A stretch of 64,000 nucleotides of DNA from Macrostomum lignano (GCA_002269645.1 NIVC01000109.1:483670-547669), one strand, 5' to 3'; counted from the stretch's first letter, positions 10,724 through 18,700 are shown. A program made the numbers and translations. The notes: generated from the sequence alone by a model not told the origin.

Positions 10724-13700
10724 ATGGAGTGTAAAATTTGCAACGTGAAAAAGTTGACATCGGAATATCCGTCTAATCCGCTGTCTGATCTGTGCGAGCA
10801 CCATCACCTGCTGGTGTGCCTGCGGGTAAGGTGGAACTGGACTGATGCATATGTACCTGCTAATTATGTACCTAGCTGATAGCCCTTTATTAAAGTTGTT
10901 TGGCAGACACGAACACTAGAGGATAGATAGCGTAGGGAATATACAATGGATAGTAGGGAATAGACGGTGTAGGGAGTAGACAATGTAGGGAGTAGACAGT
11001 GTAGGGAACAAACAGTGTAGGGAGTAGACAATGTAGGGAGAAAACAGTGTAGGAAGTAGACAGTGTAGGGAGTAGACAGTGTAGGGAGTAGACAGTGTAG
11101 GGAGTTGACATTTTAGGGAATAAACACTGTAGGGAGTAGACAATGTAGGAAGTAGACAGTGTAGGGATTAGACAATGTAGGGAATAGACAGGCTAGACAA
11201 AGCTCGGCAAAGAAAAGAGAGTGCCAAAGGTTGGGCATATATTGAGTAAACATGATGGGGGGGATGAGAAATATCAGTAATCTGACAGCTTAGAAACAGA
11301 ACGGGATCGCGGATGAATTTACATCTAAGTTGCTTGCGCATTCAATGGCTTCTATTCCTGCAGTGCGTTATCAGAGAAGTTGACAAGAACTACCAATGCC
11401 CAGTTGAAGGCTGCTCCATCATGATTGATGCTGGCGAATGCATTCCACTGTGGGAGTGCAAGGCTAAACTGAAGCAGCTCACATTTGACTACTCAGATCG
11501 GGAGAGAGCTCAGGCTGCTGAGGCTGCTGCTGCTGCATCTGCTTCCGGTGCCTGTGAGGATTGTGACCGATTCAATTGTATCGCTTGATACTTTTCCTAA
11601 TTTGTAGCTAATTCACGTTTTCTATTTAACTTCAGCTTCTGGCATTTTCACTGTGAACCTCACCACTCTGCTGGGCGAGTCTTTAAGTGTTGATTTGGAC
11701 TCCAACCAGCCGGTGGACAAGCTCAAGGATCAGGTGCTGCAGCAGTGGACAGATCGCAGCAAGAATAAAATTAAACTGCTGTTTAATGGGGACGAGTTGA
11801 CTGTGAGATGCTTTTGCTTTATAATTGCGTTTTACTTATTTATTCTTTGATTTCCACCTCTGAACTTATCTCAGAGTATCCGTGAGTACATGTAATATCC
11901 CCGAAGTATCCCAGAGTAATCCGCCCCTCCGCCCATATCCCAGAGTAATCCGCCCCTCCGCCCCATATCCCAGAGTAATCCGCCCCTCCACCCCATATCC
12001 CAGAGTAATCCACCCCTCCGCCCCATATCCCAGAGTAATCCGCCCCTCCACCCCATATCCCAGAGTAATCCGCCCCTCTGCCCCATATCCTAGAGTAATC
12101 CGCCCCTTCGCCCATATCCCAGAGTAATCTGCCCCTCCGCCCCATATCCCAGAGTAATCCACCCCTCCGCCCCATATCCCAGAGTAATCCACCCCTCCGC
12201 CCCATATCCCAGAGTAATCCGCCCCTCCGCCCCATATCCCAGAGTAATCCGCCCCTCCGCCCCATATCCCAGAGTAATCCGCCCTTCCCTCCGCCTCATA
12301 TCCCAGAGTAATCCGCCCCTCTGCCCCATATCCCAGAGTAATCCGCCCTTCCCTCCGCCCCATATCCCAGAGTAATCCGCCCATCTGCCCCATATCCCAG
12401 AGTAATCCGCCCTTCCCTCCGCCTCATATCCCATAGTAATTCGCCCCTCCGCCCCATATCCCAGAGTAATCCGCCCTTCCCTCCGCCTCATATCCCAGAG
12501 TAATCCGTCCCTCTGCCCCATATCCCAGAGTAATCCACCCTCCGCCCCATATCCCAGAGTAATCCACCCTCCGCCCCATATCCCAGAGTAATCCGCCCCG
12601 CACCCACCCGCTCCGGCAGGACAGCCAAAGCTTAGCATCAGCCGGCCTCAGCAGCGGTTGCCGGGTGCAGGTGCTGTTCGTGCTGCAGGAGCTGACGCCG
12701 GACCTCACAGAGGTTCGCATGTGCATGTCCTGGGGCTGGCCGGGCGGCAAGGACCACACGGATTACCTGGACACGGCCTGCTTCACTTTCTCGGCCGGCG
12801 CCACCGGTCGCATCCAGTTTCTGCACTGCATCGATTTTCGCAGCAGCCATCGGCAGAACGCCATCAGCGCCGGGATCAGCCAGACCTACAATCAGGTGAT
12901 CCGACACGACGGACCAGCTAGGAAGTGTGGGCAAACTCGAACTTCGGAATCTTCTTTCACTGTCTGGCCGCAGAATCTTGACGAGCTTCGAGCTCCGGTG
13001 GGCAGATTCGACCAGCAGAACGTTCGAACTGTGCCGGTTACCCACCTGTTCTTTGTCACCTTTACCTATCGAAATACCAATATTGACAGGTTCAACCACC
13101 CGCAGCTGCAGGTGAGTTATGATTATTGGCACTGGGCCATTGTTTTCTGAATTGCCGCCTCTGGCTTCTTGTTTTCTGTGAAAATCGCCAAATCTCTTGA
13201 GAATCGGCCTATCATGAGAATCGCCCTCTTTAAGAATCACCTTTTTTGAGAATCGCCCTCTACTTGAGAATCGCCCTGTACTTGAGAATCGCCCTCTTCT
13301 TGAGAATCGCCCTCTCTTTAAAAATCGCCCTCTCTTTTAGAATCGCCCTCTCTTTAAAAATCGCCCTCTCTTTTAGAATCGCCCTCTCTTTAAAAATCGC
13401 CCTCTCTTTTAGAATCGCCCTCTCTTTAAAAATCGCCCTCTCTTTTAGAATCGCCCTCTCTTTAAAAATCGCCCTCTACTTGAGAATCGCCTTCTTCTTG
13501 AGAATCACCTTCTTGAGAATCACCTTCTTGAGAATCACCTTCTTGAGAATCGCCCTCTTCTTGAGAATCGCCCTCTTCTTGAGAATTATTTTAAGAATCG
13601 CGGCCCTCTTTTTGAGAATCGCCCTCTTCTTTGAGAATCGCATTGAGAATCGCCCTGTTATTAAGAATCGCCAACTCCCATGAGAATCGCCCTGTTATTA

Positions 13701-15775: not shown

Positions 15776-18700
15776 ATGGAGTGCCAGCTCTGTCACAAGA
15801 AGAAGCTCACCTCGGAGTATCCCTCTAATCCTTTGTCTGAAGCCTGCGAGCACCATCACCTGCTTGTGTGCCTTCGAGTGAGTTCGGAAACCCTTGCTTG
15901 CCTACCTTATCATACAGATTTTTTATAAGCATGCTCAACCCCTTTTCCCACCCAACCAGTGCGTCATCAAGGAGGTTGAAGACAATTACCAATGCCCAGT
16001 TGACGGCTGCTCCACAATGATCGATGCTGACACAACTCCACTGTGGGAGTGCAAGGCTAAACTCAAGCAGCTCACCTTTGACTACTCGGATCGGGAGAGA
16101 GCTCAGGCTGCTGAGGCTGCTGCTGCTGTATCTGCTTCCGGAGGTGCTGGTAATGCACACGCAGCTGCTTTTGTTAGAGTTGTAGTGGAATCAAAAAAGC
16201 GACTGTCATTCCATCATAATTAAGCACTAATTTATCCAAAAACCCCTCATTATATAACATTCTCAGGACTCCTGAAGGTGAATCTCACCACCCTGCTAGG
16301 CGAATCTCTAGTGGTGGAGTTGGACTCTTCCCAGCCGGTGGACAAGCTGAAGGATCGGGTGCTGCAGCAGTGGACAGATCGCAGCAAGAATAAGATTAAA
16401 CTGCTGTTTCATGGGGACGAGTTGACTGTGAGTAGCCAGCCGTTCTTAAAGTGTGCATAGATAGATAGATAGATAGATAGATAGATAGATAGATAGATAG
16501 ATAGATAGATAGATAGATAGATAGATAGATAGATAGATAGATAGATAGATAGATAGACAGATAGATAGATAGATAGATAGATAGATAGATAGACAGATAG
16601 ATAGATAGATAGATAGATAGATAGATAGATAGATAGATAGATAGATAGACAGATAGATAGATAGATAGATAGACAGATAGATAGATAGATAGATAGATAG
16701 ATAGATAGTCCGTCTGTCTGTCTGTCTGTCTGTCTAGCAACTATTTTCATACTCGATATTAAAGTTACCAGCCGAGCATTCTCAAAGAGCCCCATCAGAA
16801 AGTTACCCTCTCCTACCCATTGCACACGCCTCCGCAGGACAGCCAAAGCTTAGCATCAGCCGGCCTCAGCAGCGGTTGCCGGGTGCAGGTGCTGTTCGTG
16901 CTGCAGGAGCTGACGCCGGACCTCACAGAGGTTCGCATGTGCATGTCCTGGGGCTGGCCGGGCGGCAAGGACCACTACAACTACCTGGACACGGCCTGCT
17001 TCACTTTCTCAGCGCTGCCCGGCTCTGCGCCGAAATTTCTGCACTGCATCGACTTTCGCACCCAGCGCCAGCAGGGCCGGCACGAGATCGGCGCCGCAAT
17101 CAGTCGAATCTACGACGATTTTGTTCGGCACGATGGCGAGTCCAGGAAGTCCATGCCAGATCGAAGTTCGGAATCTTCGTTCACTGTCTGGCCGCAGAAT
17201 CTGGACCGCCTGAGGGCGCCGTCTGGTAAAATCCGCGGTCCCAGAGGTCCATTTGTGCCGGTCACACATTTGTTCTTTGTGGTGTTCACGTTTCGGGACG
17301 ATACCAATATTTCCGTGTTTCGGAATCCGCAGCTCAAGGTAAGACTTTTTTGAGTTGGGAGTCTCAATAATAAGAGTGAGATTTCTCAATCCACTGATTG
17401 ATGAGGGTGAGATGTCTATGAGTCCTATCAATTGATAAGGGTGAGGTTTCTCAGAATCTCACTAATTGATAAGGGTGAGGTTTCTCAGAATCTCACTAAT
17501 TGATAAGGGTGAGGTTTCTCAGAATCTCACTAATTGATAAGGGTGAGGTTTCTCAGAATCTCACTGATTGATAAGGGTGAGGTTTCTCAGAATCTCACTG
17601 ATTGATAAGGGTGAGGTTTCTCAGAATCTCACTGATTGATAAGGGTGAGGTTTCTCAGAATCTCACTGATTGATAAGGGTGAGGTTTCTCAGAATCTCAC
17701 TGATTGATAAGGGTGAGGTTTCTCAGAATCTCACTAATTGATAAGGGTGAGGTTTCTCAGAATCTCACTAATTGATAAGGGTGAGGTTTCTCAGAATCTC
17801 ACTAATTGATAAGGGTGAGGTTTCTCAGAATCTCACTAATTGATAAGGGTGAGGTTTCTCAGAATCTCACTGATTGATAAGGGTGAGGTTTCTCGGAATC
17901 TCACTGATTGATAAGGGTGAGGTTTCTCAGAATCTCACTGATTGATAAGGGTGAGGTTTCTCAGAATCTCACTAATTGATAAGGGTGAGGTTTCTCAGAA
18001 TCTCACTAATTGATAAGGGTGAGGTTTCTCAGAATCTCACTAATTGATAAGGGTGAGGTTTCTCAGAATCTCACTAATTGATAAGGGTGAGGTTTCTCAG
18101 AATCTCACTGATTGATAAGGGTGAGGTTTCTCGGAATCTCACTGATTGATAAGGGTGAGGTTTCTCAGAATCTCACTGATTGATAAGGGTGAGGTTTCTC
18201 AGAATCTCACTAATTGATAAGGGTGAGGTTTCTCAGAATCTCACTAATTGATAAGGGTGAGATTTCTCCTTTAGTTTCAATAAGATTTAAATTAAAACAC
18301 AGATTTCACACTTAAAAAATACTTTTAAAACTACTCACACCACTTCTGTTAGTAGTATTTAATGAAACGTAGTGCTTTGTATTTATTATGATTTCGAAGA
18401 ATATAATTGTTTAGAAATGTTTCTTATGTAATTTACTAATCTCAAAAGATTTACAATCTTTTTAAATCCCAATTAATCACGAATTAGGTATTCGACCAGC
18501 GCGATCCCCAGACGCCGCTGTGCAGCACCAATTTGAATCCCAGAGCCAAGGGTCTGATTGTCTGCCTGCTGAACAAACCCGGCGGTCGCGGGGCCTGGCA
18601 GGTGACAGACGTCGGGCAGCCGCTGGCCGAAGGCAGCATCCGGGACTACAAATCTGTCTGGCAGATCTGCGCAGACATTATCGACAAACAACGACTGTAA
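15776..18700 (+). CDS. RING-like Zn finger - ubiquitin-like - TerD-like fusion protein, copy 2 (388 aa, 5 exons)
   Basis: Exons 15776-15877, 15960-16149, 16267-16427, 16838-17338, 18488-18700; GT..AG introns at the same positions and phases as copy 1; total 1167 nt, no internal stops. Confidence 0.84.
16457..16708. repeat. (ATAG)n microsatellite in intron 3 of copy 2
   Basis: About 63 units with rare ACAG variants. Confidence 0.97.
17430..18265. repeat. 34-bp minisatellite (attgataagggtgaggtttctcagaatctcact[a/g])n in intron 4 of copy 2
   Basis: About 24 nearly identical head-to-tail units with no spacers; each unit is quasi-palindromic. Confidence 0.95.

Follow-up and report, generated by a model that had tools for sequence, protein, structure and literature searches.

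What does TerD, a domain known from bacterial stress operons, do in a flatworm protein that also carries two modules of the ubiquitin system? This question is raised by a 64,000-nucleotide stretch of the Macrostomum lignano genome (GCA_002269645.1 NIVC01000109.1:483670-547669; hereafter the window, with positions counted from its first letter). Two tandem genes on its plus strand (gene 1, 10724-14011; gene 2, 15776-18700), each read with five exons, encode proteins in which a RING-type zinc finger is followed by an internal ubiquitin-like domain (Ubl) and a predicted TerD-like domain. To our knowledge, how TerD works is poorly understood even in bacteria. Where a eukaryotic protein joins TerD directly to domains of the ubiquitin system, the probable part of TerD is to sense or recognise something, with an output that can be read as ubiquitylation, and the RING–Ubl–TerD family to which the flatworm genes belong would offer a clean link between TerD and ubiquitin signalling. 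The best-supported model from our analysis, to which we give an even chance of being correct, is that these proteins act as RING E3 ubiquitin ligases that use TerD as a ligand sensor or substrate recogniser.

Splice-aware reading yields two complete products of 388 amino acids (aa) each, and both tandem models proposed in the initial annotation were found again in public records. All eight introns across the two genes are of the GT-AG type. The gene 1 product matches the public protein BOX15_Mlig002613g1 (P0001) at every one of its 388 residues, and the public model of gene 2 has 389 aa, with a start one codon further upstream. Both genes are present in the public annotation of GCA_002269645.1, where they lie on the 973-kb contig NIVC01000109.1 between large eukaryotic genes. 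Since that annotation derives from RNA-seq, through genome-guided transcript assembly with StringTie/TACO (PMC5730564), it backs the exon junctions indirectly. The junctions also make sense at the protein level: joining exons 1 and 2 restores the invariant C32-x2-C35 pair of the RING, the exon 3/4 junction falls inside the ubiquitin fold and the exon 4/5 junction inside the TerD domain, and the spliced proteins align unbroken with relatives from other phyla. The 388-aa length depends on the choice of donor in exon 2. For gene 1, the donor at 11547, which would yield 386 aa, was rejected because the GTGAGG donor six bases downstream (11553) reproduces the 388-aa public protein. Gene 2 has two in-frame donors, 16143 (386 aa) and 16149 (GTAATG, 388 aa), and the reading from 16149 agrees with the homeologous public protein P0002, which has the same 'GGAG'. 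A tblastn search with P0001 found no copies beyond gene 1 and gene 2 in the whole window. One further entry, P0003 (UniRef A0A1I8..., 346 aa), is an older, mis-spliced model of gene 1 in which part of exon 2 is skipped and the start of exon 4 is read in the wrong frame ('[22 protein letters not shown]...'), so the database entries for this locus are inconsistent.

Gene 1 and gene 2 are best explained as expressed, selectively maintained paralogues that arose by local tandem duplication in M. lignano. Their proteins are 76% identical, and the ratio of nonsynonymous to synonymous substitution rates (dN/dS) between them is 0.33 overall, indicating that the two genes are maintained by selection and are neither chance open reading frames (ORFs) nor pseudogenes. 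By region, dN/dS is 0.12 in the RING, 0.20 in the linker, 0.25 in the Ubl and 0.43 in TerD; among the three domains, purifying selection is thus strongest on the RING, and TerD evolves fastest. Outside the exons, in introns and flanks, the two genes are not similar. Exon 4 as a whole is only 75% identical between them, although its first 138 nucleotides (nt; 12620-12757 versus 16838-16975) do not differ at all. This stretch spans the Ubl/TerD boundary and appears to have undergone recent gene conversion. Exons 5, 2 and 3 also contain perfectly matching but shorter runs, of 54, 40 and 36 nt, respectively.

The N-terminal domain of both proteins contains a full set of zinc ligands in C3HC4 order (C3, C6, C24, H26, C32, C35, C46 and C51). 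Across 18 family members, ten columns are invariant: these eight ligands, together with E14 and P16, which form a family-specific E-x-P loop beside the ligand set. When an N-terminal family profile was compared with solved structures in the PDB, only RING domains were matched, led by RNF4 (1.7e-6), RING2/BMI1 (2.4e-5) and BRCA1 (9e-4) and including RAD18, MAT1, COP1 and RNF8; Pfam RING models were matched directly by 3-4 of the 18 relatives (best zf-C3HC4, 8.5e-6). The invariance of the ligand set and the match of the profile to solved RING E3 domains support the RING-type assignment made earlier.

PF00240, the Pfam ubiquitin family, scores 35.1 and 35.0 bits in the two proteins against a gathering cut-off of 25.4, and in the AlphaFold 2 (AF2) model the Ubl superposes on ubiquitin and ISG15 with a root-mean-square deviation (rmsd) of 1.1-1.4 Å over 72-79 columns (Foldseek). 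A phmmer search of the PDB with the whole protein gave ubiquitin-like matches only, among them RAD23 Ubl domains. Neither Ubl has a C-terminal GG: the domain ends in '...[14 protein letters not shown]', and TerD follows directly. A conjugatable Ubl precursor was rejected on this ground. Judged from the protein sequence, the Ubl is an integral domain, as had been claimed, and not a conjugatable modifier.

An integral, non-conjugatable Ubl and a RING-type zinc finger in one chain recall Parkin, and the last ligand pair ('CP-x3-C') resembles that of RBR RING1 (direct reading). The domain order differs from that of Parkin, the flatworm proteins lack an IBR and a catalytic RING2, and the N-terminal profile matches classical RINGs, not RBRs. 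Parkin is among the Foldseek matches of the predicted structure with an rmsd of 17-22 Å, which means that only individual domains match. An RBR E3 ligase of the Parkin/ARIH type was therefore rejected: a single zinc-finger module is followed by a helix (residues 61-94) and then by the Ubl, and no IBR match was found with Pfam.

The C-terminal domain is a predicted divergent TerD beta-sandwich, a reading that draws on distant homologues and on a structural model. When single sequences and isolated N- and C-terminal parts were searched with Pfam, ubiquitin was the only significant match. A word-indexed search for homologues got no further than three M. lignano proteins, and the wider family was reached by an exhaustive search of 1.84 billion representatives, in which phmmer with the C-terminal 214 residues gave 76 matches. 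Of the 48 best relatives, 44 contain the Pfam TerD domain (PF02342) and 21 also contain PF00240. A full-length profile search of the PDB was dominated by ubiquitin; domain-only alignments were used for RING and TerD. A TerD profile of 30 domains, including three flatworm paralogues, matched the bacterial structures 3IBZ (3.4e-14) and 2KXT (4.9e-14) over about 150 residues, which is almost the entire domain. AlphaFold gave a predicted local distance difference test score (pLDDT) of 38 without an alignment; with a 20-sequence alignment, pLDDT was 86.3 and the predicted template modelling score (pTM) 0.67. The resulting model contains a small N-terminal module, the helix at 61-94 (pLDDT ~60), the ubiquitin fold and then the C-terminal domain, in which residues 185-363 are nearly all beta-strand. 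A Foldseek comparison with TerD structures, proposed in the initial annotation, was made with the whole model against the PDB and placed 2QNG at rank 16 behind ubiquitin matches (E 3.6e-6, 193 columns, target-normalised template modelling (TM) score 0.63). This protein, with 2KXT and 2QZ7, has been named as a TerD-family structure (PMC9191617). Both the profile matches and the predicted fold thus agree with the TerD-like identity first put forward for this domain.

Bacterial TerD proteins (Klebsiella pneumoniae 2KXT/2KXV; Streptomyces coelicolor 3IBZ) have a homologous beta-sandwich in which W29, L41, D42, H75 and G77 are conserved. They differ from the flatworm proteins in being single-domain members of ter stress operons that bind two Ca2+ ions, and in having an acidic GDN-x-TGEGDGDDE loop that the flatworm proteins lack. 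In Klebsiella TerD, the first Ca2+ is bound by D40, L41, D42, D78, N79 and E89 and the second by W29, G82, G84 and D88 (PMC8779313). Only W29, L41 and D42 among these ligands are kept in the flatworm proteins: D78 is replaced by P (gene 1), E (gene 2) or N (the third M. lignano paralogue, P0004), N79 by A or S, D88 by E or T, and E89 by S. The eukaryotic family retains W29, L41, D42 and D78, has a His-His pair at D88-E89 and lacks the acidic GEGDGDDE loop.

Within the family, the flatworm copies are divergent. Among 218 family domains, the last D of the D-Y-L-D motif is present in 205/206, the D of H-S-G-D in 186/208 and the second H of G-H-H in 185/212. Gene 1 has DYLD and gene 2 NYLD; HSGD is replaced by HDGP in gene 1, HDGE in gene 2 and HCGN in P0004, and the family GHH by SES, with E-S or T-S in place of the His-His pair. 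The HSGD Asp and the GHH His are thus replaced in all M. lignano paralogues examined. The partial alteration of the metal-site motifs noted in the initial annotation (DYLD kept; HDGP/HDGE) was exact, with the addition that gene 2 has NYLD and that the motif replaced is HSGD. The flatworm proteins also have insertions: ~13-17 additional residues precede 'VTHLFF', and the loop ahead of the H-x-G motif is longer. Given the loss of the HSGD Asp and GHH His, the flatworm copies probably recognise something different from what canonical members bind, or use TerD purely as a protein-binding scaffold.

Proteins of ~340 aa with the RING–Ubl–TerD architecture occur in a starfish (Patiria), a brittle star (Amphiura), amphioxus, the brachiopod Lingula and the coral Stylophora, as well as in many bivalves and gastropods, in which one contig often carries several loci, in glomeromycetes (Gigaspora, Ambispora, Cetraspora, Dentiscutata) and in the amoebozoan Mastigella. 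Domain order and size are the same as in the flatworm genes; examples are Branchiostoma floridae XP_035674620, Patiria miniata XP_038050107, Lingula anatina LOC106173543, many bivalve and gastropod loci, and Glomeromycota proteins with the annotation 'tellurium resistance protein terZ-like'. Features shared between the eukaryotic family and the flatworm proteins include the invariant RING ligands, a 'KL(S/T)xE(F/Y)P' loop, the Ubl without GG, and a TerD core comprising WG(Y/W)P, (D/N)YLD, 'THLFF' and an invariant W, G and Y near the C-terminus, whereas identity over the TerD domain is only 21-29%. By their architecture, their KLTSEYP and D/NYLD motifs and their loss of HSGD and GHH, the M. lignano genes are best described, from sequence, as members of a divergent subfamily of this family. 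This M. lignano-type subfamily had hardly any close relatives in the databases: apart from entries of M. lignano itself, the one match was P0210, which lies on a contig of 1.1 kb and is orthologous to the third paralogue. Several paralogues lie on one contig in Mytilus californianus (with near-consecutive locus numbers), Haliotis rufescens and H. asinina, and M. lignano has the tandem pair and the third paralogue.

More than 316 proteins match the family at E <= 1e-10, and those with a database name are all called 'uncharacterized', 'Ubiquitin-like domain-containing', 'TerD domain-containing', 'terZ-like' or 'stress response protein SCP2'. Public databases thus already contain the genes and the family, under the label of hypothetical or uncharacterised proteins and with Ubl+TerD relatives labelled automatically, and our finding overturns nothing. 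Our literature search, which did not extend to a 2012 comparative-genomics survey of Ter systems, found no paper studying or describing a RING–Ubl–TerD fusion, and the gene identifiers were not found in papers or in genome-paper supplements. The absence of functional names and of papers fits the earlier statement that eukaryotic fusions of TerD with ubiquitin-system domains exist but are functionally uncharacterised.

Some relatives have further domains. A freshwater mussel protein (P0007; Potamilus streckersoni KAK3606152) has the order vWA–RING–Ubl–TerD, two proteins of 1100 aa (P0043 and P0055) combine LIM domains, EF-hand pairs, ankyrin repeats and TerD, and other relatives carry two TerD domains. 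As far as domain content can indicate, these additions echo the partners of bacterial Ter systems and calcium signalling.

RING fingers of the C3HC4 type recruit E2~ubiquitin, and integral Ubls dock to ubiquitin receptors or regulate a ligase in cis, as in Parkin. In the model that we consider best supported, the N-terminal C3HC4 RING would recruit a ubiquitin-charged E2, and the internal Ubl could serve as a docking or autoregulatory module that engages the proteasome or partners with UIM or UBA domains, or packs on the RING as in Parkin. The TerD beta-sandwich would sense a ligand, either a metal ion or a small metabolite, or recognise a partner, and would link this binding to ubiquitylation.

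Several observations weigh against this ligase model. Single flatworm sequences reach only E 0.49 with the Pfam model zf-C3HC4_2, below significance, and the spacing between the RING His and the following Cys is 4-5 residues (H-x4/5-C) compared with the usual 2-3. The hydrophobic residue before the second RING Cys usually contacts the E2; the flatworm genes have I or L at this position, which varies across the family. The flatworm copies also have no basic 'linchpin' residue directly after the last Cys (direct reading). E3 activity is uncertain because of the unconserved E2-contact residue and the missing linchpin. On the TerD side, PF02342 gives no match in either flatworm C-terminal domain even at E <= 10, since motifs are replaced and insertions present, and Ca2+ sensing in the bacterial manner appears unlikely for the flatworm TerD because the acidic ligands D78, D88 and E89 are not kept. 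No biochemical data for any family member were found in our literature search. The main rival reading is that the proteins are non-catalytic adaptors or shuttles, with a zinc finger that would be only structural or protein-binding and a Ubl that would carry TerD-bound cargo to the proteasome or to ubiquitin receptors, as in Rad23 or ubiquilin. We regard this as possible but doubtful. It is consistent with the lack of conserved canonical E2-contact positions in the family RING, with an L8/I44/V70-type hydrophobic patch kept in the Ubl (direct reading against ubiquitin) and with the RAD23 Ubl domains among the sequence matches; however, eight zinc ligands and an E-x-P loop that are invariant across very distant eukaryotes, a profile whose significant PDB matches are all RINGs from ligase complexes, and the lowest dN/dS of the three domains in the RING argue against it.

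If the proteins are RING ligases, the TerD domain could serve more specifically as an invertebrate stress or immune sensor that binds a nucleotide-derived or metal-complexed signal, with tandem expansion driven by host-pathogen conflict. TerD has been named as one of the candidate domains for binding nucleotide derivatives in bacterial conflict systems (PMC7159879), the same-contig paralogues of Mytilus and Haliotis and the M. lignano set fit tandem expansion, and TerD is the fastest-evolving domain. Its dN/dS is still well under 1, however, and the flatworm copies have lost exactly the residues expected for a conserved small-molecule ligand, and we consider this sensor role unlikely. Equally speculative, and in our judgement improbable, is a broader scenario in which the RING–Ubl–TerD family would consist of ubiquitin ligases gated by a ligand and derived from the bacterial Ter stress and anti-phage module, acting as a metal- or nucleotide-signal switch in invertebrate stress responses and innate immunity, with the flatworm subfamily retuned to a new ligand or target. 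An artefact, whether bacterial contamination, recent horizontal transfer of TerD or decaying pseudogenes wrongly spliced together, might be suspected since TerD is mostly bacterial and Pfam misses the domain in the flatworm sequences. We nevertheless put its probability close to nil and treat it as ruled out. Each gene has four spliceosomal introns, two of them within the TerD-coding part; large eukaryotic genes flank the pair on a long M. lignano contig; nearly all of the closest relatives are multidomain proteins of eukaryotes; the frames are intact, with a dN/dS of 0.33; and the gene 1 model equals the RNA-seq-derived public annotation.

M. lignano is well suited to work on these questions. 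Its compact tandem pair, with a putative ligand site that departs from the consensus, is a natural comparison with the canonical members of amphioxus and oyster. RNA interference is in use in M. lignano. Transgenesis has also been reported in this species (PMC5730564).

Table 1 Exons of the two RING–Ubl–TerD genes and tandem repeats between and within them (window positions).
Feature	Position	Strand	Details
Gene 1 exon 1	10724-10825	+	aa 1-34; RING ligands C3, C6, C24, H26, C32 and 'KLTSEYP' loop; ATG start, donor CGG|gtaagg
Gene 1 exon 2	11364-11553	+	aa 35-97; C35, C46, C51 ('CPVEGC'), then helical Ala-rich linker; acceptor cag|TGC, donor CCT|gtgagg
Gene 1 exon 3	11636-11802	+	aa 98-153; N-terminal two thirds of Ubl; PF00240 E 1.2e-8, 35.1 bits; donor ACT|gtgaga
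Gene 1 exon 4	12620-13111	+	aa 154-317; end of Ubl (no GG) and most of TerD-like domain (DYLD; HDGP)
Gene 1 exon 5	13796-14011	+	aa 318-388 and stop; C-terminal third of TerD-like domain; invariant W354, G366, Y371; acceptor gcag|GTA, TGA stop
Gene 2 exon 1	15776-15877	+	aa 1-34; first part of RING; 82% identity to gene 1 (tblastn)
Gene 2 exon 2	15960-16149	+	aa 35-97; second part of RING ('CPVDGC') and linker; donor CTG|gtaatg
Gene 2 exon 3	16267-16427	+	aa 98-151; Ubl; PF00240 E 1.2e-8
Gene 2 exon 4	16838-17338	+	aa 152-318; end of Ubl and most of TerD-like domain (NYLD; HDGE)
Gene 2 exon 5	18488-18700	+	aa 319-388 and stop; end of TerD-like domain; acceptor ttag|GTA, TAA stop
Minisatellite, 16 bp unit	10953-11191		Tandem Repeats Finder
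Minisatellite, 30 bp unit	11907-12599		Tandem Repeats Finder
Minisatellite, 18 bp unit	13196-13766		Tandem Repeats Finder
Minisatellite, 33 bp unit	15076-15718		Spacer upstream of gene 2; Tandem Repeats Finder
ATAG repeat, 4 bp unit	16457-16708		Tandem Repeats Finder
Minisatellite, 34 bp unit	17370-18268		Tandem Repeats Finder

The longer introns and the intergenic spacer (within 10826-18487) each consist largely of a different, unrelated minisatellite of up to 63 copies, and this repeat content gives rise to long spurious ORFs on both strands.

Upstream of the pair, the plus strand of the window (~1-7076; L001 1-6353) encodes a 5070-aa product with AAA_5 matches, which from its size and domain may be midasin. 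The downstream neighbour, on the minus strand from ~22242 (L001 21519-23288), has a 2654-aa product with no Pfam match on record. Further along the window, strand asymmetry is extreme at ~42600-44000, 48000-50000 and 58000-60000 (GC skew ~0.52-0.57, AT skew ~0.46-0.50); direct reading shows 42660-42900 to be a GA-rich, purine-only tract of low complexity. Related tandem arrays with units of 48, 65, 175 and 191 bp lie in inverted orientation at 49611-50146 and 57009-57821.

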